A DNA stretch of 64,000 bases from Blepharisma stoltei ATCC 30299 (lineage: Eukaryota; Protista; Ciliophora), in contig CBFDEM010000058.1 of the NCBI GenBank assembly GCA_965603825.1, forward strand, positions 310,001 through 374,000, read 5' to 3'. Shown here piece by piece: positions 465-30,964 of this stretch. The position numbers and the translations under genes were made by a program. The first letter of the stretch is position 1, and every line of letters begins with the position of its first letter. The notes beneath the pieces are model-generated. The model ran no database searches, was not told the DNA's origin, and saw only the letters and a program-made list of their open reading frames with translations.

Positions 465-1821
465 ATGAGTCATAATATAAGAAGCTCAAGGTCTCGGTCT
501 CGTAGCCCACTCAGAAGTATCCCACTCTTTCCACTGATCTTAGCAATCCCAAAATCAATTATAAACGCTGACTTCATAAAGCTTCAAGAAAAATTGGCAT
601 CAAAATGCGAGGTGGATCGTCTCCACTTGGCATCAGAAACAAACTTGCCAAACTTCGATGAAGGCTTCCTCTACATCTATGGCCCATCTCTTAAAGGAAA
701 AATCGAAATCCTTAAATCAATTCTTTCAGAAATTCAAAGAATTATTGACAGGCCCACTTTGGAACTAAAAATTCTGATCCCTGATAATTTAATTGAAGCT
801 CTTACAGGCAAAGGCGGGAAATTATTAAATAAAATCCAAACAAATTCACATGCAACAATCACGATTGTTGAAGAAATAAAAAACCTCAGAGAGCGTCTTA
901 TAAAAATTGAAGGCAGATCAGCTGATGTAGAATTGGCGATTAAAGAAGTTTATAGGCTTATTGTAGAAAGAAAATCAAATTCTGAGCCAAAATCAGTTCT
1001 CGACAAAACTTCAGCGAAATTTGTAATTCCTGGGGAATGCGTTGGATACTTGATAGGGAAAAATGGATTATTTACCAAGAGGCTTAAGGCGGATTATGAC
1101 GTAGAAATAAAAATTGTGAAAAATGAAGGACTGCCTTGTAAGGACAATGAACACATTGCGGTAAGAAATTATTCAGATGTTGTTAGGGAAATATCGCTAT
1201 GTGAAGACTGCGATTGAAATTGTTGTTGACAAAATTCTAGAAGCAATAGAGACTACATGCAGCCCAATTTCTGATTTGCTGGTAAGAATGCTTATACCTA
1301 CTCAAATGGTAAAAGAACTGATTGGCCCACAAGGATCAATAATTAAAGAAATTTCCAAAAAATCAGGAGGAGCGAAGATTAAGGTCATGTGTGACACTGA
1401 GACCGAAAAAATGCAGGATTTCACAATAGTTACAATCGATGGCTCTAGAGACTTAAAGCAAGAGGCAGCAATAAGAATTTATGAAGTTATCAGCAGAGGT
1501 CATAAACCTTCAAGCCCTTCTTCTAGAAGAAGCCGTGGATACTCTCCATCTCCACCAACTGATAATGTCAGCATTTTCGTCACAGTTCCTGATGCTCTTG
1601 TGTCAAGATTAATAGGAAGAAATGGAGACAATGTGAAAGGAATGATGAGTCGATCAAGAAGCCAAATGTCATTCCAAAAACAGCCTTCAACTGAATTAAA
1701 AACCCCAGAAAATGATAAAGCGAGACTTTGCACTTTTACAGGAAGCAGCTCTAGCATAGCTCGAGGAATAAAGACTTTACTAGACCAAATTATAAAATTA
1801 GAAAGCGGAAGATATGATTAG
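465..1821 (+). CDS. Multi-KH-domain RNA-binding protein (PCBP/hnRNP K-like), about 446 aa, one intron
   Basis: KH GxxG loops (LTGKGGK, LIGKNG, LIGPQG, LIGRNG) and an RS-rich N-terminus. The 16-nt intron 1161-1176 joins ORFs 465 and 1177 in frame. Confidence 0.88.
1161..1176 (+). other. 16-nt spliceosomal intron
   Basis: GTAAGAAATTATTCAG; removal restores the KH reading frame; A at -6. Confidence 0.85.
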
Positions 1822-1912
1822 CTAACCCTAAATTATGTTAAATATAATGTTAAGTCTGATAATTTACAATCTGACTTAACATGCTGCGACTATTTTAATA
1901 GAAAATTATAAT

Positions 1913-2944
1913 TTAGCCTAAATTCAAACAGCAAATTGCAATTCCAGTTTCGCTGCTGGAATCAGCTTCAGAGTCATGCACCCAAATGTGAGAATTCCAG
2001 TCAGTCCATCCCATTGCTCGGGCTACTTGATATCCAGCTGAATGCAGCTCGATTGAGGTGCATAAATGATGTGTGTCTTCTGGGCAGCTTTCTTCTGCGT
2101 CAGATAACACACAATTAATACACCCAAGCCTAATATAGTATGCTTCAATTGCTCCCAACGCTCCTGCACTTTCTGCTTCTATTTCTTCCTCTTCAAGTTC
2201 TCTATTGAAATATCTCACTTCATCAACATAAAACGAGACTGGACAATCCTCAAGAGTCGAAGGAGTATTTCCAATATACAATGGGCTTGAGTTTGTCTGT
2301 GTCCATCCGTCAGTAGAATTTACTGCATCTTTTATTCCATTCACAAAAAGCCTTATTCTTGACTGTGTTCTGACAACTCCTATATGTGTCCATCTATTAA
2401 ATGGAATTCTTGCATTGGAAATTACATACTCTCCTTGAGGGTGTTTTACATCTTCATCTGTAGATACATAAGCTTTTAGCTGGCGATCTTCTCTGTCATA
2501 ATACACAGCTGGGACTCTCTCATATATAACTTGGTCTTCTTGGTCATTTCCTTTCTGTAAAAGAGGACACCAACGCAACCCTTCTGAATTTTGAGAATCT
2601 CCAATGAAGACCCAAAAAGTCACGGAGAATAAAGTAGAGGATAAAGAACCGTTGGAATCAGGGATTTCTATATAGTCACTTCCTGTTATTGACGCACTTG
2701 TACCTTGGCCACCATATGATGGGCCTGCACCTACTGTTTTGGATGCATGATTTTGACTGCCTGAAGAGTCAAGGCCTGAGTCATCGTCAAAAGTTCAGTG
2801 GCCTTTTAGACCGTCTTGAACTGCGTTAGGCATTAATACAGTTTCACCTCCGAATAAGCAGATACCACCTTGCAAGGTCATTTCACATAAGTCGCTCCCA
2901 TATGCTAAGAAAAGTGAGATCAAAATTACCGTTTTCAGCAACAT
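1913..2944 (-). CDS. Secreted LamG/concanavalin A-like domain protein, 343 aa
   Basis: Signal peptide MLLKTVILISLFLAYG; LamG motifs GLKGH(W=TGA 2795-2797)TFDD..DSSG..NHA, RWTHI, LFVNG, LYIG, DEVRYFNREL; Cys-rich C-terminus. Confidence 0.85.
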
Positions 2945-3200
2945 ATTTAAAAGATAATTAAAATTTAAGCAAATACAAATGAGAAGCTCTAAGAAGTCAG
3001 CATGTTATTTTTAATAAATCCATAGTAAAGCTGCCCTTTAGTAGTCTTTATTTTTCTCTTTAATATTTAATAAGATAGAAAATGCCTTTAACATGAGCTT
3101 CCTTATTCACGCATCTTATTTTATTGATAAATTCGTCAGTTCTAGATTCTTATTTTCCTGCTCAGTTTCTCATTATTTTCTTTCTTTTTATAAAAGTAAT

Positions 3201-4684
3201 ATGAATCAAAGTTATAGCTATAAATCAAAATCCCCATACAATGCCAAAATACGTAAGTTTCTACTTCAGCTAAGTCTCGCCTCTTATCTTTAACTCGTTG
3301 GATAAATTCTCTGCATATATGGAGGAACTTAACTGAAAAAGAACTCCCAGAACAAGCCAAAACAGGGGTTTTACTAATTTTTCTTATCCAAGCTGTAGAG
3401 CCCACTATTGAATTTCAAAATTTTTCTCCTAAGCCGAGCTCTAAAAGATTTTGCATTAAAAATCTGGATCAGGCCCTTTCTGCTATTTCTCAACTTGCAG
3501 GGCCTTCTGTTCTATTGCCAAGATCTGAAGAGATTTATCAAGGAAATCAAGAGAAAATGTGGCAATTATTGGATTTTATATTCGAACTTTTCATTATGAC
3601 ACCTGCGAGGAAATCATTCAAATCACTTGTCAATTGATACATAAGAATTTTGGAATTGCATGGAGTTTCCATAAATTCGATTGAAATTCTTTCAAGTTTT
3701 AGAAACGGAGTGAATTTTATGATAGTGATTAATTGTTTATTAGATGATGTCGATTTAGAAGAAATTTATTTCAACCCACAGAGCAAGTCAGAGCTGACAC
3801 AAAATTTAGCTGTCCTTATAAACGTAATGAAAAAATTTGGGATTCCTGTCTGTGTAACAATTGAAGAGCTGGGGAATTTATTAGACCAAGATTTAATTTT
3901 ATTGCAATTATATTATGTATATAGAGCTTTGCATGATAGGATCCCTATCAAAAAAAATTTAAAATTTAAAGATGATATTCAAAGATCAATAGAAAAGCTC
4001 CCAATTGAAAAATCAGCTTTGCAGACAGAAGTCAGTGATTTTATGAAGCCAAAAGGATTTTTTTCACAATTCACTCCCAGAAGCTATGGGAAAAACAAGC
4101 TCGAGTTTGATTGCACCAAAGAAACAGAATCAACAAATGCAGTTTCAACCTCAGATTTGTCTCCTTCTTATTTTTCTTCCAAATTCTCAGCAGATAGATC
4201 ATTGTCTCCAATAAAAATTGAAATAATTTCTGATACTTCAGATTCTTTTCTGGAGTATAAACCACAAAAAAATATTTTAAATATAGAAACAAGTCCAGTT
4301 AAGCCATCTCCAAGCTTACGAGTAATACGCCCACCAGAGTTCCATCACAATCCTCATCAAAATTTATCAAATGATAAAGAAAAAGCTTTACTTTACCTAC
4401 TAACTCCAAGAATTCTTAAATTACATATCGGATCTTGCTTCCAAGCCTTTATGTTCAGCATCGTTTTGGACTCGTTTTTAGCTGAGGAGTACTCATTTGA
4501 GTGAAAAAATTTGGAGACTATGGAAACTGAAGGGAAAATAAGAATAAAAGATATATCCAATGTTTCTTATGAGAAACGGGTTCTAATGATACAAGAAAAG
4601 AGTAAAAGCTTGCAGATACAGTGTCTGGATGCAAATGAAGTCAGTAGATATGTGAAATCGCTGATCGCTATGAGGGATGCTTAA
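3201..4684 (+). CDS. Tandem calponin-homology domain protein with C-terminal PH-like domain
   Basis: The frame from 3272 reads LTRWINSL...TGVLLIFLI...CIKNLDQAL...MWQLLDFIF (CH1), then a second CH domain (SFRNGVNF...TQNL). With TGA read-through it runs to TAA at 4682-4684. The start at 3201 requires a putative 17-nt intron (3253-3269). Confidence 0.7.
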
Positions 4685-20736: not shown

Positions 20737-20993
20737 TGCGAAAATTGTACACGATTTATTTAACTTAACTCATTAAATTATAAAATTTCTCAACTTCTAC
20801 TAAATCCGATATTATTGCTAACTCTTGAACTTTGATTATTTATCTCAAAAAAAATTATTAAGGAAGGTAATAATAATAATAAATTGTAAAAAATATAGAC
20901 TAGTTTTCTTATCCATTCCTAAACTATCGTTTTAAACAATTGTCTGCTTTTGATATATCATTTAGTAGTAATCAGCTTGTGGAGATAATATTA

Positions 20994-22211
20994 ATGGCAT
21001 CTTGGAACCTATCATCTTCACAACGTGCTAAAGACACGATAAACCCTATCAGAGAAACAGTAGCCACCATTCTTCTTCCTACAGATTTTCATCTCCCCAC
21101 TTATTCCTTAGCCCTAGGTGATCCTTCAGTGTTTCCTGATTTCGCTGTGAACCCTATTTTCACAAGAATCGCTCAAGAAAATCTTCTGTCAGGAACTGGA
21201 AATGGCTACTGTTTAGCAGCAGGACCTAGGCCAGCCCGTGAAGCATTAGCAAGACAATTTTCTTATGAAAATATTCAGCTTAGTTGGGAAGATGTAATCC
21301 TTGATATCGGTGGAAGCGGAGCAATTCATACAGCCATGCAAGTATTTTTAAACCCAGGAGACAATATTCTAATCCCAGCCCCTGGCTTTCCTCTTTATAA
21401 GTGTATGGCAGGCAATTTAAGTGCAGAAGCAAGACTATATTCATTAAGACCTGACCATGGTTGGGAAATAGACTTCAATGACTTAGACAGACTAGTTGAT
21501 GAAAGGACAAAATTGCTAGTCATCATAAACCCATCAAACCCTTGTGGAAGCGTTTTTACAAAGGAGCATTTATTAGAAATTTTAGATTGGGCAGAAAGGC
21601 ATAAAATCTGTATTTTAGCTGACGAAGTCTATACAGGAATGAGCTATGGGAAGCCTCACATCCCAATCGGATCCTTAACTGATGAAGTCCCTGTTTTTAC
21701 TATTGGTGCTATGAGCAAAATGTATTTGGTGCCTGGATGGAGATGTGGCTGGCTTATTGTCTATGATAAACACAATAAATGTGCAGAATTCAGAGATGCG
21801 ATATTAAAAGTAAAAAATATGCTTTTGCATCCTGCTCCTTTTATCGCGAACTCTATACCAGCAATTATAGAACAAACTCCAGAAAACTATATGAGTGAAG
21901 TTATGCAAAAAGTTAAGGAAAGAGCTGAACTTGTGTACCAAAAAATTCAAGAAACTCCAGGATTATCAATGCAGATGCCTGAAGGAGCTCTATACTGCAT
22001 GATTTCTATAGACTTAGAAGCTTTTGAAGATTTTGGAAATTCAATTATTTTTGCTGAAAAACTAGCAAGGGAACAAGGAGTCTTGGTGCTTCCTGGAGAA
22101 AGTTTCATGAGTCATAGAGCCTTTAGAGTTGTTCTATGCCAGTCAAGAGCTGTTCTTGAAGAGTGCATGGACAGAATTAAAAATTTCGCAGCAGCACATC
22201 ATAAAAAATAA
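20994..22211 (+). CDS. TAT: Tyrosine/aromatic aminotransferase (class I PLP), 405 aa
   Basis: LGDPS.FP, NGY, PAPGFPLY, INPSNPCGSV, ADEVY, PLP-lysine motif GAMSKMYLVPGWRCGW, LPG..F..RV. Confidence 0.92.
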   Translation: MASWNLSSSQRAKDTINPIRETVATILLPTDFHLPTYSLALGDPSVFPDFAVNPIFTRIAQENLLSGTGNGYCLAAGPRPAREALARQFSYENIQLSWEDVILDIGGSGAIHTAMQVFLNPGDNILIPAPGFPLYKCMAGNLSAEARLYSLRPDHGWEIDFNDLDRLVDERTKLLVIINPSNPCGSVFTKEHLLEILDWAERHKICILADEVYTGMSYGKPHIPIGSLTDEVPVFTIGAMSKMYLVPGWRCGWLIVYDKHNKCAEFRDAILKVKNMLLHPAPFIANSIPAIIEQTPENYMSEVMQKVKERAELVYQKIQETPGLSMQMPEGALYCMISIDLEAFEDFGNSIIFAEKLAREQGVLVLPGESFMSHRAFRVVLCQSRAVLEECMDRIKNFAAAHHKK

Positions 22212-22288
22212 TTAAAAGTTGCATTAACTGCATTTATTGCTCGAAAAATATAAATATAAAGCATTTTTAAAATTATAAAATAAATTAG

Positions 22289-23425
22289 TTAATAATAAGT
22301 TGTTATCATCAGCTTTCTTGTATTTTCAATCAAGCTATTTAAAAACGACTCAATAGAAGACCCACCAGTTCCCTTAGTGCTGCCTCCTTGACTTGGCTTG
22401 ATAATATATTGATAAGCAAGTTTGCAATGCGTTTTTCTAAAATTAGCAAATTCTTCTATCACTGAATTCCATTCGTCAACTGCATCCAAATCAACGACAG
22501 TTTTCCTGATATCTTTTGGCCTGCTTTTTTCAACGAAAGCGATAAAGTCTCTATGCTCTTTTTTCATATATGGGAAAATCCCTGATAAAAATGTATCATT
22601 AGAATTCAAAGTAAAAATTGCATCGATAAGCCGAACCAAGGGGCTTTGGGCTGCAGTTGACCCCATTAGCTTTAGAGGAGTCTCAGAAACTCCTTCATAT
22701 ATTACACCGTCAAAAGACCCTAAGTATCTTCTGAAGCCAAAATAAAATACATTTGGATCTACCCTTTGAAAGACCAATGACAAAGCCTTTTTCATATCTT
22801 TTAATGTATCAACAAAAATTTTTAGTGAATTTTTGACGTCTTCCTCATTTTTGGTTTGGATTCCATTATAAAATGTCGGAATTGTTTCAATTATTGCATT
22901 GCCCAAGTACTCAATATAAGTCCCACAGTGGTAAAAGAAGGTCTCGTCATCAGTCCCTGAGAAAGTAAACAAGCTATCAATATTATCTGGGTGGAATTCC
23001 TTCGATTCATCTTTCAACTTCCAGTTTTGGAAATTCGTGGAAACAATTGAAATCATAGGGGCACGATCTAAATGATTGCTTAACCTGCAAAAAGGAACTG
23101 AAATATTTGATGGAATTCTCTGAGAAGGAGTGCTTGAATGCCAATAATAAGCTGAAGCAAGATACGCATGAAGTAGAGTTGCGAGCTCAATTTGATCATT
23201 ATCGTCTATTATTAAGGATGGATCAAACCTAGGCAGCTTCCTTATTTGGCTTGCTAAGTCTGATGGGTTGTCCTGGATTGACTTGACTAAGTTGTAGTGA
23301 GGCAAAAGTGCTTCAGATGTTGGAATGCTCAAAGGTGGAATTGACTGGACAAAGGATTGGATTGGGAGAGACTGAAATGATAAGAGAGAGCTCGGGAGGG
23401 TGCTGAAAAGCCTTGAAAAATTCAT
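22289..23425 (-). CDS. IDO: Indoleamine 2,3-dioxygenase, 378 aa (probably the 5-hydroxytryptophan-preferring isoform)
   Basis: AYYW, P.I....NW, FSGTDDETFF, DPNVFY..FR.YL, GSTAAQS loop, proximal heme His in FRKTH..AYQYI, GTGG motif; residue 131 is Asn. Confidence 0.93.
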   Translation of the reverse strand: MNFSRLFSTLPSSLLSFQSLPIQSFVQSIPPLSIPTSEALLPHYNLVKSIQDNPSDLASQIRKLPRFDPSLIIDDNDQIELATLLHAYLASAYYWHSSTPSQRIPSNISVPFCRLSNHLDRAPMISIVSTNFQNWKLKDESKEFHPDNIDSLFTFSGTDDETFFYHCGTYIEYLGNAIIETIPTFYNGIQTKNEEDVKNSLKIFVDTLKDMKKALSLVFQRVDPNVFYFGFRRYLGSFDGVIYEGVSETPLKLMGSTAAQSPLVRLIDAIFTLNSNDTFLSGIFPYMKKEHRDFIAFVEKSRPKDIRKTVVDLDAVDEWNSVIEEFANFRKTHCKLAYQYIIKPSQGGSTKGTGGSSIESFLNSLIENTRKLMITTYY

Positions 23426-23809
23426 TTATACACTTGATTGTTTGTCGCGAATAAATCGACCAATTTTCCTCGCTTGAAGATCACATTTTTATTATGTTTA
23501 TTATTTTAGATAAATTAGTTGCCATTTTTCCTCATCTGAAGATTAGACTTAAAAATAATTATTTAAATAGATAATTTAGTTATTTAAATCTTTATATTTC
23601 TTATATTAAATTATTTGAAAGGAAATTAGATAGCTTATATTAGTATATATAAAGCTGTATTGGTTTACTAATTTTTTAATTTCTGACTTTAGTTTACTTT
23701 TAACGTATGAGTACTTTGCTTTAGTTATCTTCTCTAATTATAATATTATAACTTAAAATTAATCGATCTTACTTATCTAGATTTCATCTTATTTATTTAA
23801 TAGAAAATA

Positions 23810-26800
23810 TTATTCTATGCCCAAAATTTTATTGATCAAAAAATTTGATTCTTGAGACCCTGTATGCATAATCATTTTTCTGAATAATGATTTTTCTTTG
23901 TTTATCAACTCATAAGGTGTTCCAACCTCTTTGCAGCTCCCTTTATTCATAACAATTATTCAATCAGAATCAACAATAGTCCTCAGCCTATGAGCAACAA
24001 TTAGAAGTGTGCTGTCTCCCAACATTTTTTTAATCTGATTTTGTATGAATTTATCAGTTTCAGGGTCCACGTTCGCAGTTGCTTCATCCATCATTACAAT
24101 TTTATTTTTCCTGATAAGAGCTCTCGCTAAGCATACAAGCTGCTTTTGGCCTGATGATAAATTTCCTCCTTCACCAGTTAGGAGTGAATTGATTCCATTT
24201 GGGAGGGATCTGGCTAACTTATTAAGCTTTGTTTCCTTTAGAATTTTTAAAATTTCTTCTTCTGAGTGCTCATGGAATGGGTCAATATTATCACGAAAAC
24301 TTGCCAAAAATATGGTAGGTGACTGAGGGATTACAGACATTTGCTTTCTTAACTGATGAAGTCCTGCATTCATATAATCTTGGCCATCAATATAAATAGT
24401 TCCTGAAGAAGGATTTATGAGCCTAAAAAGAACTTGCATTATTGAAGATTTTCCAGCCCCAGTCCTGCCAATAATTCCAACTTTTTGTCCAGGCTCAATA
24501 GTGAATGAAAGATTTTTCAGTGCATAAGGATAGTTTTCCCTATATCTCATATATAATTCTTTTACTTCGATTTTTCCTTTATCTATTATGAAGGGATTTT
24601 CCGATTCAAATTTTCCTTCCTCTTGAATATCAGCATACTCAATTAACCTTTGTGGAGAAGTCATTAAATTTTCTACCTCAGCTACTGTTTTGGCCCAAAA
24701 AGTAATGACTGTTGCCATCACAATTGATAAAGAAATGCTCATTGCCCCTAAACTTGAATTTATATGATCCTTATATAATACTAATATGACAACATTGAGA
24801 ATGTTTATGAACAAGGCACCAAGTTCTGTATATCCTTGATATGTTTTTAACACAACGTGGTAGCTTAGTAAGGATCTTTCACTATGAATTATTGCATTCT
24901 TCATGTCATCAAGAAATTTATTTTGGAGATTTAGTGCCCGAATGGTTACCAAGCCATTGATTGTAGAATTTGCTAAAGAAAGGATTGGACTTTTAGAAAT
25001 CAGCTCAATTTTTCGTAAGTCTTTTGTTATGGGTACAACTTTTTTGGCGATGATAAAGACATATATAAAAAAAATAAAAATAACAGCTATATTGGGAGGA
25101 GCAACAATAGATAATACAATAATGTTTCCCAAAACTGTTGCAGACTGAATTACGGCTTCTGAAAAGTATCTAAGAAGAACTTCATCAGTCATTAAGGTAT
25201 CTTTCGAAAACCGATTTATCATCCTTCCAGTAGGATTTTTATCAAAAAAGACACTTTCTGTCAGGGTCATTCCTTGTAAAGCTTTATTATGGATTCTCTC
25301 ACCAGCCATAAGCAGCCCTATGCTCATTATATAAGATCTTGCGAATGTTAAAACATAATTCACACCAACTATTATTGCAAAAATTCATAAATAGAATGAG
25401 TCAGTTTGATCATCATCTGATGCTTTTGCCCATAATGCCAGCCACCAAATTACAGCTAGGTATGATACTTGCCCAGCAGCCACAATTAGCATGACAATTA
25501 CTATAACTATCCATGATCCGAATCCATATCATAAATATTTATAGTATATTTTCCAAGGTGTAGACCCCTCTGCACTCTCTTCTTCTTCAATTGCTATTTT
25601 ATCTTTCACTTCCACTTTTGCGTTAGTTTCTTTTGCTGCATCTTTTTTATCCTCATCTTCTTCATTATCTTGCTCAAGAAGCTCCCCTACAATGTGAAAA
25701 ACATCTTCTCTTGCTCTTAACTCTTCATAGTTTCCAAAAAACAACTGATTTCCACCATCCAACACCAAAATTTTGTCAGCTTGAGAGATGTAGTGAATTT
25801 GGTGCGTTGCAAGAATAACAGTTTTATCTTTTAGATACTCTTTGATGCAGGTGTTAAATAGATATGAACTTACCTCAGCATCTACTGCACTTAAAGGATC
25901 ATCAAGCAAGATTATTTCTCGGTTGGTATAAATTGCTCTGGCTAGGCTTATCCTAGCTTTTTGTCCGCCACTTAGGGTAATCCCACGATCACCTATCACA
26001 GTTTCATCCCCATGCGCAAAACTTTCTAAATCTTGTTCAAGAGAGCAGACTTTGATTATTTTATGATAGAGCTCTTCACTATATTCCAAGCCCATCAGGA
26101 TATTATCTTTGATACTGCCTGATATAATTCATGGATTTTCTCCAGCATAAGTGATTTCCCCATTAATTTTCATTTTTTCACCGTATGTTTGGATTTCTTG
26201 TAATAAGCCCATAAATAAGCTACTTTTTCCGCTTCCAACCTGCCCTACAACCATTAATAGCTCGCCTGGTTTTATTTTAAAATTAATATTGCAAAGTGTT
26301 GGCCTAGGAGTTTCCTCCGTCAATCTTGGGTTTTCATCATCATAACTTGAAGAGACTTGGTCATATCTAGGTGATTTTGCATAGTCATTCTGATTTCAAG
26401 AATCATTTCATGAAAAACTTAGATCTTTAGCTACTACAGAATATTCTTCATCACGTTCATAAATAATATTCAATTTTTTCTTCATTAATAATATATCTGT
26501 AATTCTTCTCATAGAAGATTTAAATAAAAATAGCATGAGAACTCCGCTTGCTCCCCAATTGGAAATTAAGCTATGAGCCATCATCAGCACAGTAACTCCT
26601 GCAAACACAACTCCTGGCTCTAGAGAGTGTCCCATAGAAACATAAATTAAAAATGTCACAAAAAGCACAAGGCCAGTTCCACCATTTCCCATTGATCTAT
26701 TTAACGATGAATAAGTTAACCCTTTCAAACATTTACTTATTTCTTCTTTCCTTTTTTCAAAAATCAAATCTAAATAAGGACTTTCCCAACCATATAATTT

Positions 26801-27616
26801 TACAATCCTGATCCCTTCGATTAAGTTTGTGATCATTTTAATACGTGAATCACTGACTAAAGCAATTTTTCCTCGGTATTTGCCATTAAGGACACTTAAA
26901 AAATATATGAACGGATAATGAAAAATAATAACAATAAGCCCAATGATACCTGCTGGCCCAATATAAAAGCCTAAGATTAAAAACGATCCGATAAGGAATG
27001 GTACTGCTGCAAATAAATAAACAATATAGACAATGACATCCATAAATTCCAACTCAGAAACTATTACATTAGCCAATTTCCCTTTTATATTACCTTGGGA
27101 TAGCTCCATATTTGATATCCCAAAGAGTTTATCATAGATTAAACGAGGTACAACTGATTTCAGCCTTATTACTAGCATAGTCACTCTAAAAATGCATAAA
27201 TTTCACATATAATATGATATAAGGGCAACTGCTCCATATGCAATTGTGTAGCCGGCTCCTTCATAAGCTTCTGCATTGCTATCATTCATATATCTAGCTA
27301 AATATATGACAAGTATAGCTTGAATTAGTCCGAAACTTTGTGACAAAATACCTGGGGCAAAAATTTTAATTACTTCTCACCCTATAACTCTTAAGAGCGC
27401 CCGTTCAAAACTCGGCTTTTCCTTTTTCAGTTCTTTTTGTCAAGATTCTTCTATTAATTCAAGATCTTTATCAAACCGGAGGCGTTTTGGGATTTGAGCT
27501 AAATTTTCTGTGGTTGCCTTTTGCTTTCTTCAAAAAGATATTAGAGGAAATCCTCAGCTCATAACTAGATCGTTGAAAATAGTTGCCTTATCATATAAAA
27601 ATTCTGGAGTTTCCAT
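23810..27616 (-). CDS. ABCC/MRP-family (ABCC4-like) full ABC exporter, 1268 aa
   Basis: One frame across TGA codons from ATG 27616 to TAA 23810-23812. NBD1: [30 protein letters not shown]2: [24 protein letters not shown]. Two TMDs, no TMD0. Confidence 0.94.
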
Positions 27617-28572: not shown

Positions 28573-29706
28573 CTATGAAAAAGTTTTACCTTGGAACGAG
28601 AGACTTAGTGAAGAATTTGTTTTTTCGTGTTCTGATGTTCGCAGAATCCTCACGCTAGAATTTTCTTTTGCTTCTCTCTCCACGATACTTTGAGGAATCA
28701 GGGTATAGACTTCCACTTGTTCTTCATAGCCAACTATTTCTGGCTCTTTACAATCTTCAATTAGACTGGATGATGGAATTATTTTGTCCACATCCCCTTG
28801 CTTATAGTTTGAAAAGAGTTTAATTTCATGCGACTCGTTATATAGCTCAGAGCTAGTTAATTGGCTAGTTGCTAATGGATTTGAACTACTATGGGTGGGG
28901 GTAGAATTTTCTTCTGAGTTTTCTTTGTTTTTGTTTTCAGTACTCTGACTATTTCATTGATTTAATGATTTAACGTCCGGACTCCCAGGAGTGCTTTCCC
29001 CATCTCTATAGCTTGTGTTTCTGCTATTCGAATTAGAATCAATGCCATTTTTAGATATTATTTTTTCCTTGTCTTCTCTCTCATGAATATATTTATTATG
29101 CTCTTCAAAGTTGAGATCAATAGCCGATTTTCGATTTGTAGTTGGAGGAGAAGCATCTCCTGTAACTACTTCATATAATAACTCACCCGTTTCGTTTTTC
29201 TTAAAAGCTTTTTGAAGGACTTTCAAGATTATAAAAGATAAAATTTCTATTGCAGCCCTAAAGACAATAAAGCAATAGGTGGAGAAAAATGCAATAGAGA
29301 GCCCTGAATCTTTGCTGTTGTTAATTTTATCATCAAGATGAAGACAAAAAATAAAGCCGATTATAATCAATGAGGAGTATCCGATAAGAAGCAGCCATCC
29401 TATAATTTGGGATAAAAGTTTTGATCGGCAAACTATTCTGTGCTTTTTAAATATACTTTGTATTAACATCATAGAGAAATCTATTAAGAGGACTATCCCA
29501 GATACAAATAAATATTCTGGAATGTAGCTATTTTTGATAAGATTGCTATTGTGAATTATAGTGTAAATTGCAGTAGCAAGGCAAGTAGTAGCTAAAAGTA
29601 GTGTAAATATTGGAAATATAAAAGATCCGTAGTAATTCATCGGCTCAGGATTTGAGGATAAGCCTGCATCTGGATTATTTTGAGAAAGGGAAGAATTACT
29701 TTCCAT
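28573..29706 (-). CDS. Orphan membrane protein, 377 aa (4 N-terminal TM helices plus disordered C-tail)
   Basis: ORFs 28954-29706 and 28573-28791 share a frame across TGA 28954-28956; four hydrophobic segments. Confidence 0.8.
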
Positions 29707-30031: not shown

Positions 30032-30964
30032 TTATATTAAGCTAAAGGCCTTCAAAGCTGATTTTTTCATCTCGGTGAAGTTTTTAGTCTTGAAATAAGC
30101 AGGCTGATATGAAGAAAGGGTAAAATCCATACTGAGGATTTTTTTAGTGTCCCAACCAATAAACTCACATTTATCTTTTTTTACATGAAAAATTTCTTTG
30201 CAAGACCCAAGGATACCTGCACCCAAAATTTTATCGCCTACGATTCCAAATTCTATTGAGTAAAAATAAATTTTTGCTAGTTTCGCAATGTCCTCTTCGC
30301 TTGCTCCCAGAGATTTCTTCCCAATTTCTTGAGAAAATTCAGCAATTTCTTCGTTTCCGAAGAGAGGGACATGCCCCATGAGCTCATGCACAACGTCAGG
30401 CTCAGGCGAGTAAAAAGGAACCGAAATGTGGCGAATATATCTCGTTGAGAAAAACACTCTATAAGCTAGCCCGTATAAAAAGGACCTAGCATTGATCATT
30501 CCTCCAACCGGAATAAGTTTGAAGCCAGTTTTTGTCCCTAATCAGTTGTTTATTTTTGAAAACTGTGGTATCTTTTCTCCTGTATAAATTCCCAAATTTT
30601 CTAACTCTTGGAGGTTTAACTTATGCTCATCACAAGCATAAAGATAATGAAGCTCTCTAAGCCTTGCGTAAAGGAGGCTTCAGGTTTTATTTGCTTGATC
30701 TGGATAGAAAACATCAGGAACTTCTGAATTAACTGAGGAGCTGCAATTTCTTACAACGCGAAGCCAATTCATATAGTCAATGTCGTCTAAGCCTGGATAA
30801 GAAATTCCAAGCTTTTCAAAAAAATTTTCGTAAGATTTATCTATAGTATCAAGATCAGATCGGGATCTTGGGTACCAGAAACTTTGGTGGAACGTTGCGA
30901 AAAATTGCTTTGTTGATCTGAAACTTAAGCTTCAAATCACCATAAATATTTTTTTCTCAAACAT
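30032..30964 (-). CDS. Biopterin-dependent aromatic amino acid hydroxylase, catalytic domain only, tryptophan-hydroxylase-like (start at 30964 or 30943)
   Basis: WYPRSRSDLD, KT(W=TGA)..LY..L, IPQF, TGF.LIPVGG, YIRH..P.YSPEPDVVHELMGH (Fe His ligands), YFYSIEFG (Fe Glu ligand), GAGIL, YQP.YF. Confidence 0.92.

Follow-up and report, generated by a model that had tools for sequence, protein, structure and literature searches.

Among the indoleamine 2,3-dioxygenases (IDOs), described systems close to the gene discussed here include human IDO1 and the enzyme IDO-I of the ciliate Blepharisma stoltei. The gene is found in a stretch of 64,000 nucleotides of the B. stoltei ATCC 30299 genome (the window in the following; contig C58, positions 310001-374000, in a genome assembly of 41.46 Mb and 64 contigs), where it occupies positions 22289-23425 of the minus strand. 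The Blepharisma work of 2017 and 2018 reportedly established that IDO-I prefers 5-hydroxy-L-tryptophan (5-HTP) as substrate and that it opens the pyrrole ring to yield 5-hydroxy-N-formylkynurenine, from which the mating pheromone gamone 2 is said to derive. Gamone 2 itself is a 3-(2-formylamino-5-hydroxybenzoyl)lactate (PMC9542385). An IDO is connected with pheromone biosynthesis in the title of the earlier study (Sugiura, Yuasa and Harumoto, Protist 2017), and the regulation of both affinity and specificity is ascribed to one single residue in that of the later one (Yuasa, Sugiura and Harumoto, Arch Biochem Biophys 2018). For the human enzyme, the tryptophan site was described to be lined by F226, L234, F163, V130 and Y126 and to be capped by a small N-terminal helix (PMC5700043). 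Human IDO1 binds 5-HTP with a Kd of 1360 µM as compared to 38 µM for tryptophan, that is about 36-fold more weakly, and binding was concluded to be governed by how polar the 5-substituent is (PMC13440583). The analysis presented here suggests, with a probability of roughly 85%, that the gene in the window encodes the 5-HTP-preferring IDO that makes the gamone-2 precursor, and that Asn131, probably together with Gly168, accommodates the 5-hydroxyl group of the substrate.

How securely can the gene be assigned to IDO-I? The open reading frame extends from the ATG at 23425-23423 to the TAA at 22291-22289 and comprises 378 codons plus the stop codon, with no in-frame TGA, all three tryptophan codons being TGG. 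In a collection of 5.8 billion proteins its top match is BBA46264.1 (A0A286T8B9), recorded under the name 'indoleamine 2,3-dioxyganese-I [Blepharisma stoltei]', with 377 of 378 residues identical. The sole amino-acid difference is located at residue 181 (codon 22883-22885, minus strand), which is ACA for threonine in the window and GCA for alanine in the deposit. Identity to the paralogues of the same species is far lower, at 65-66% for IDO-IV, 47% for IDO-III and 45% for IDO-II. The initial annotation had proposed that this gene is IDO-I, and the database match bears this out, as none of the other three isozymes came up as best match. Judged by its sequence, the open reading frame is the macronuclear gene for B. 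stoltei IDO-I; both the gene and the residue in question have been published before and are not new. The reading of UGA as tryptophan and the compact gene layout match the published macronuclear genome of ATCC 30299 (PMC9942806). A scan for bacterial promoters and terminators gave counts at chance level, as is expected for a ciliate, and was set aside.

Family, fold and catalytic residues agree with this assignment. The Pfam family PF01231 (IDO) matches residues 25-352 with 199 bits at a cut-off of 26 (E 1.4e-58), and human IDO1 chains are matched in a phmmer search with E values of about 1e-28. An AlphaFold2 model, built from an alignment of 35 sequences, has a mean predicted local distance difference test score of 92 and a predicted template modelling (TM) score of 0.89; it adopts the two-domain all-helical IDO fold and is matched by Foldseek to human IDO1 and IDO2 with E values of about 1e-19 and TM scores of 0.85-0.88. 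In the 35-sequence alignment the carboxylate-binding Arg232 (human Arg231; 22730-22732, minus strand) is invariant, and the proximal haem ligand His333 (human His346; 22427-22429, minus strand) and the JK-loop motif GTGG (residues 352-355; 22361-22372, minus strand) are nearly so. An artefact of the gene model was considered as the source of the residue numbering and ruled out: the deposited protein starts at the same methionine, a gapless, transcript-like contig lies over the coding sequence, and the only ATG further upstream, at 23486, belongs to another reading frame. Because this contig, from the run designated X1, spans 22362-23483 without gaps and with zero differences to the window, the gene contains no intron and the numbering of its residues is unshifted.

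Counted from the ATG at 23425, residue 131 is an asparagine encoded by AAT (23033-23035, minus strand) in the context RAPMISIVST-N-FQNW, exactly as the initial annotation had it. That annotation had also placed the residue opposite Val130 of human IDO1 without gaps. The phmmer alignment to human IDO1 agrees, as it is ungapped from before residue 106 to past residue 230 and puts Ile127 opposite Tyr126, Thr130 opposite Cys129 and Asn131 opposite Val130; the human numbering was verified through the constant offset of three residues between the 406-residue and the 403-residue chains in the PDB. The further claim that the Val130 position lines the indole-binding A site is in line with the substrate complex of human IDO1 (PMC5700043). 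According to DSSP applied to the model, residues 127-132 (I-V-S-T-N-F; 23030-23047, minus strand) form a short helix, which by the alignment would cap the distal pocket. What had been observed about residue 131 is thus confirmed, and the interpretation given to it is supported by what follows.

Searched in six frames with the IDO profile, the whole genome yielded four intact IDO genes plus a fifth, degenerate copy, which accords with the four IDOs that the initial annotation gives for B. stoltei. IDO-IV (371 residues, one of them different from deposited IDO-IV) is found on the same contig as the window, 130 kb upstream, in the stretch C58:200383-204375. The other two intact genes form a tandem pair on contig C15. 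One of them, with 376 residues, is IDO-III, which falls into one 90% cluster with the deposited allele BBA46267.1 (= CAG9316051.1) and differs by 10 residues from BBA46268.1; the second, with 373 residues and no named counterpart among the deposits seen, is presumably IDO-II. The two genes of this pair (C15:61929-67221) are separated by only 148 bp. In a MAFFT alignment the column of Asn131 contains a different residue in each of the paralogues, namely His129 (CAT) in IDO-II, Glu132 (GAA) in IDO-III and Gln125 (CAA) in IDO-IV, and the glutamate is present in both the deposited and the genomic IDO-III. A maximum-likelihood tree groups IDO-I and IDO-IV as sisters with support of 100/99, and IDO-II, IDO-III and one environmental sequence with support of 99/98. 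Since IDO-I and IDO-IV are sisters and glutamine occupies this column in IDO-IV and in all of the Stentor-like and other heterotrich-like relatives, parsimony makes glutamine the ancestral state and asparagine a derived state acquired on the branch of IDO-I. The degenerate copy, located on contig C21, groups with IDO-I (support 88/87) and carries CAT for histidine in the column; this histidine could possibly represent an intermediate on a path from glutamine to asparagine by single steps, CAA to CAT to AAT.

Asparagine at this position is also rare in the wider family. A search of 1.84 billion representative proteins provided 181 IDO-family members, and in the column of residue 131 these have V (54), D (47), A (16), Q (13), T (12), C (12), I (10), S (6), N (3), E (3), L (2), G (1) and H (1), with one gap. 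Among the ciliate IDOs recovered, Asn131 is unique. The column therefore has the appearance of a variable, specificity-type site at which asparagine is seldom found. A high variability would equally be expected if IDO-I was an ordinary tryptophan-degrading enzyme of the kynurenine and NAD pathway and its Asn131 a product of neutral drift, and the general catalytic residues of IDO-I are indeed those of any IDO. Such a reading is nevertheless very improbable, as asparagine is derived and stands alone among at least 13 relatives bearing glutamine, and as the depositors named the protein IDO-I and the title of the 2017 study ties an IDO to pheromone biosynthesis. Moreover, other positions of the pocket have changed as well. 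Tyr126 and Ser167 were reportedly tied to the high tryptophan affinity of IDO1 in work by Yuasa in 2016. The equivalents of these two residues are isoleucine and glycine in IDO-I, which speaks against neutral drift and would be in line with an enzyme whose pocket is not optimized for tryptophan.

Two IDOs have been deposited as 'synthetic construct' and are 84% and 58% identical to IDO-I, as might be expected of ancestral reconstructions. The closer one, designated P0002, is presumably a reconstruction of the common ancestor of IDO-I and IDO-IV. At fifteen pocket and catalytic positions derived from human IDO1, IDO-I and P0002 differ only at two, residue 131, which is asparagine in IDO-I and glutamine in P0002, and residue 168 (22922-22924, minus strand; human Ser167), which is glycine in IDO-I and alanine in P0002. 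From P0002 to IDO-I both changes enlarge the pocket, and the asparagine retains the amide. As for the published experiments, chimeras of extant and ancestral enzymes are said to have led Yuasa and colleagues in 2018 to Asn131 of IDO-I and Glu132 of IDO-III, one aligned position, as substrate-determining residues. This account is very likely correct, because Glu132 of IDO-III indeed sits in the column of Asn131 and because two synthetic IDOs have been deposited.

How could an asparagine at this position favor the hydroxylated substrate? The hydrophobic pocket of animal IDOs would be expected to tolerate a 5-hydroxyl group poorly. In the model of IDO-I, Asn131 is placed on the capping helix, at the position of human Val130 lining the A site in which the indole is bound. 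The replacement of the ancestral ciliate glutamine on the IDO-I branch would have shortened the side chain by one methylene group while keeping it polar, and this could provide both room for the 5-hydroxyl group and a partner for a hydrogen bond. The exchange of alanine for glycine at residue 168 probably aids this effect. The C2-C3 bond of 5-HTP might then come to lie in a productive pose above the oxygen bound to the haem. This would be the simplest mechanism, with Asn131 putatively touching the 5-hydroxyl group directly.

Alternatively, Asn131 may matter without touching the 5-hydroxyl group, if it reshapes the capping helix, the water network or the pose of the substrate together with Gly168 and residues of the second shell, so that it would be necessary and not sufficient. 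Two pocket positions and not one distinguish IDO-I from P0002, and single pocket residues were seen to flip the whole indole in structures of IDO2 (PMC13440583). The presence of glutamate in the same column of IDO-III points in the same direction. This glutamate reportedly raises the affinity for L-tryptophan, which a contact with the 5-hydroxyl group would hardly explain and which suggests a more general effect of the position on the placement of the indole. Against an indirect effect it can be held that the 2018 study, by its title, credits one residue with regulating affinity and specificity, and that the exchange of glutamine for asparagine is a conservative shortening, as would suit a plain effect of size and polarity. 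An indirect mode of action appears less likely and is a serious alternative, and direct accommodation of the 5-hydroxyl group by Asn131 is preferred.

Several points weigh against the preferred interpretation. In human IDO2 the 5-hydroxyl group of 5-HTP comes near the residue equivalent to Tyr126, and the substrate is bound in a flipped, non-productive pose (PMC13440583), so that the geometry proposed for IDO-I cannot be taken for granted. No open paper was found that repeats the residue numbers Asn131 and Glu132, and the designation of Asn131 as the substrate-determining residue has indirect support, from the cross-check with Glu132. Furthermore, a query with the fragment of amino acids 110-210 recovered no partial IDO-I orthologues from other species of Blepharisma. 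Among the sequencing runs, a contig of run X6, which represents a relative with about 89% identity, overlies codon 131.

Is the gene transcribed, and does it vary between strains? Four sequencing runs of one 2022 study cover the stretch, and the contigs of two of them were compared with the window. These contigs have the size of genes and end at gene boundaries, covering an aminotransferase at 21013-22232, IDO-I at 22362-23483 and an ABC transporter from 23822 onwards, and the interval 23558-23754 is devoid of contig coverage in the compared runs. The transcript-like contig of run X1 defines a minimal 5' untranslated region at 23426-23483 (minus strand). The 3' untranslated region measures about 25 nucleotides up to the poly(A) site (22264-22288, minus strand), which is marked in a contig of run X5, a close relative or another strain, by a loose stretch of T that precedes 22264 in plus-strand orientation. 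The gene-sized contigs have the appearance of transcripts, and together with the poly(A) end they show that IDO-I is transcribed. The convergent mRNAs of the aminotransferase and IDO-I end some 30 bp apart (contig ends near 22217-22232 and poly(A) site at 22264), so that they nearly abut without overlapping.

In run X4 the IDO-I contigs show 23 differences to the window (2.1%), in contrast to the contig of run X1, which is identical. Nineteen of the 20 differences listed are synonymous and the remaining one is T181A, giving run X4 the same GCA codon as the deposited cDNA; none of the 20 touches codon 131. This pattern would fit purifying selection on IDO-I, and such strong constraint between alleles is a further argument against neutral drift as the origin of Asn131. 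The X4 contigs of the flanking aminotransferase (1240 nucleotides) and ABC transporter (2880 nucleotides) show zero differences to the window (20978-26700). Either two strains were mixed in this run and only the other strain expressed IDO-I, or the divergence is confined to IDO-I. The runs also differ in the word depth of the assembled contigs, which is a poor measure of expression, and their sample identities are coded: IDO-I reaches 8.5 in X1 versus 293-372 in X4, an approximately 40-fold difference, with values of 507 and 435 for the aminotransferase in X1 and X4, respectively, and of 14 versus 20 for the ABC transporter in two runs. Expression of IDO-I is reportedly found for the most part in cells of mating type II, and the contrast between X1 and X4 may hint at such a bias.

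The surroundings of IDO-I contain several genes that might serve the same pathway. Convergent to IDO-I, with 77 bp between the stop codons, lies a class I/II aminotransferase of 405 residues (20994-22211, plus strand; PF00155, E 6.7e-55), of which 393 residues are identical to a protein from the Blepharisma japonicum transcriptome MMETSP1395. On the other side follow, all on the minus strand, a full-length ABC transporter of 1268 residues built of two membrane domains and two ATP-binding domains (23810-27616, read with TGA as tryptophan), an open reading frame of 377 residues with one TGA (28573-29706), which has no Pfam family and only weak, membrane-protein-like matches, and a short biopterin-dependent aromatic-amino-acid hydroxylase of 310 residues (30032-30964; PF00351, E 1.2e-58). 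Tryptophan codons of the TGA type are absent from the 405 codons of the aminotransferase and the 378 codons of IDO-I, and 11 are present in the adjacent ABC transporter. The aminotransferase, the ABC transporter and the hydroxylase are all found within 10 kb of IDO-I, and it is plausible that the neighboring genes make up a gamone-2 gene cluster around it. In the literature collection searched, no open paper was found that describes such a cluster.

IDO-I is the only intact IDO paralogue that adjoins an aminotransferase, which again would not be expected if its Asn131 was a product of neutral drift. The neighbors examined of IDO-II, IDO-III and IDO-IV encode one protein with a PX domain, one with a RING finger and others of unknown type, and no genes of a tryptophan pathway are among them. 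A second adjacency of this type exists at the degenerate copy on contig C21 (C21:758025-761423). The pseudogene (local positions 804-1943, minus strand) is interrupted by frameshifts and several stop codons, and both the proximal histidine and the GTGG motif are missing from it. At a distance of 172 bp and head to head with it lies the paralogue most similar (67% identity) to the aminotransferase in the window (local positions 2116-3336, plus strand). This aminotransferase has only three close paralogues in 41 Mb. The chance of an aminotransferase-IDO adjacency is of the order of 3 in 10,000 per copy; the pairing is therefore older than the C21 duplication. The second adjacency supports a role for IDO-I as anchor of a pheromone cluster, in which the gene would be physically grouped with the other parts of the gamone-2 pathway, that is the aminotransferase, an ABC exporter and the hydroxylase, through a pairing that predates the duplication. 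That this constitutes a metabolic cluster for a ciliate mating pheromone is a tentative proposal, to which we give slightly less than an even chance.

Two observations speak against a neatly assembled cluster. The window's hydroxylase belongs to a set of nine biopterin-dependent aromatic-amino-acid hydroxylase genes in the genome (on contigs C37, C28, C36, C57, C58 twice, C27, C15 and C5), and no reductase was recognized among the open reading frames scanned, which cover about 8-41 kb of the window. The nine hydroxylases fall into two score classes, four copies with 348-444 bits and open frames of 415-450 residues and five copies, including the one at 30032-30964, with 267-279 bits and about 310-350 residues. 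Both the number of hydroxylases and the lack of a recognized reductase in the scanned part would also be in line with IDO-I preferring 5-HTP for a role other than gamone 2, such as the removal of 5-hydroxyindoles, with neighbors that are unrelated to it; the same holds for the word depths, which, poor measure as they are, show no visible co-variation of the neighbors with IDO-I across two runs. This possibility is nevertheless improbable, since on C21 the nearest paralogues of both the aminotransferase and IDO-I again lie side by side, against the low odds given above, and since the structure of gamone 2 is that expected from hydroxylation of tryptophan, cleavage by an IDO, transamination and reduction (PMC9542385). 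A function of IDO-I in the biosynthesis of the pheromone is thus the more probable role in the cell.

What does the locus add to the known enzyme? With isozyme and residue already published, the assignment alone contributes no new biology. Its value lies in providing an anchor, as an identity of 99.7% fixes which of the four IDO genes occupies the locus. By tying the locus to the pheromone enzyme, it turns the aminotransferase, the ABC transporter, the protein of 377 residues and the short hydroxylase into candidates, open to testing, for those steps of gamone-2 synthesis that are still missing. New is the fifth, degenerate IDO copy on C21 beside a paralogue of the aminotransferase. Should the assembly derive from mating type I, the type I macronucleus would keep an intact IDO-I gene, and the specificity of the pheromone would be set by expression and not by gene content.

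Compared to human IDO1 (PDB 5WMU and 6E46), with which it shares 23-25% identity, IDO-I has in common the fold, the proximal histidine, the equivalent of Arg231, the GTGG loop and the equivalents of Phe163, Phe226 and Leu234. It differs in that human Tyr126, Cys129, Val130, Phe164, Ser167, Gly262 and Ser263 are replaced by isoleucine, threonine, asparagine, tyrosine, glycine, serine and threonine, respectively. Much closer are IDO-II, IDO-III and IDO-IV, which resemble IDO-I in family, in length (at most 7 residues apart), in the catalytic histidine, arginine and GTGG motif and in belonging to a heterotrich-specific clade. The nearest described counterpart is the deposited IDO-I itself, BBA46264.1, the protein of the 2017 and 2018 studies, which agrees with the product of the window gene in its 378 residues, in Asn131 and in the species of origin. 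From this cDNA the window copy is distinguished by Thr181 instead of Ala181 and by about 22 further nucleotide differences, nearly all of them synonymous. Unlike the IDO-I deposits, which are cDNAs devoid of genomic surroundings, the copy in the window is a genomic locus and provides the gene with its chromosomal context.

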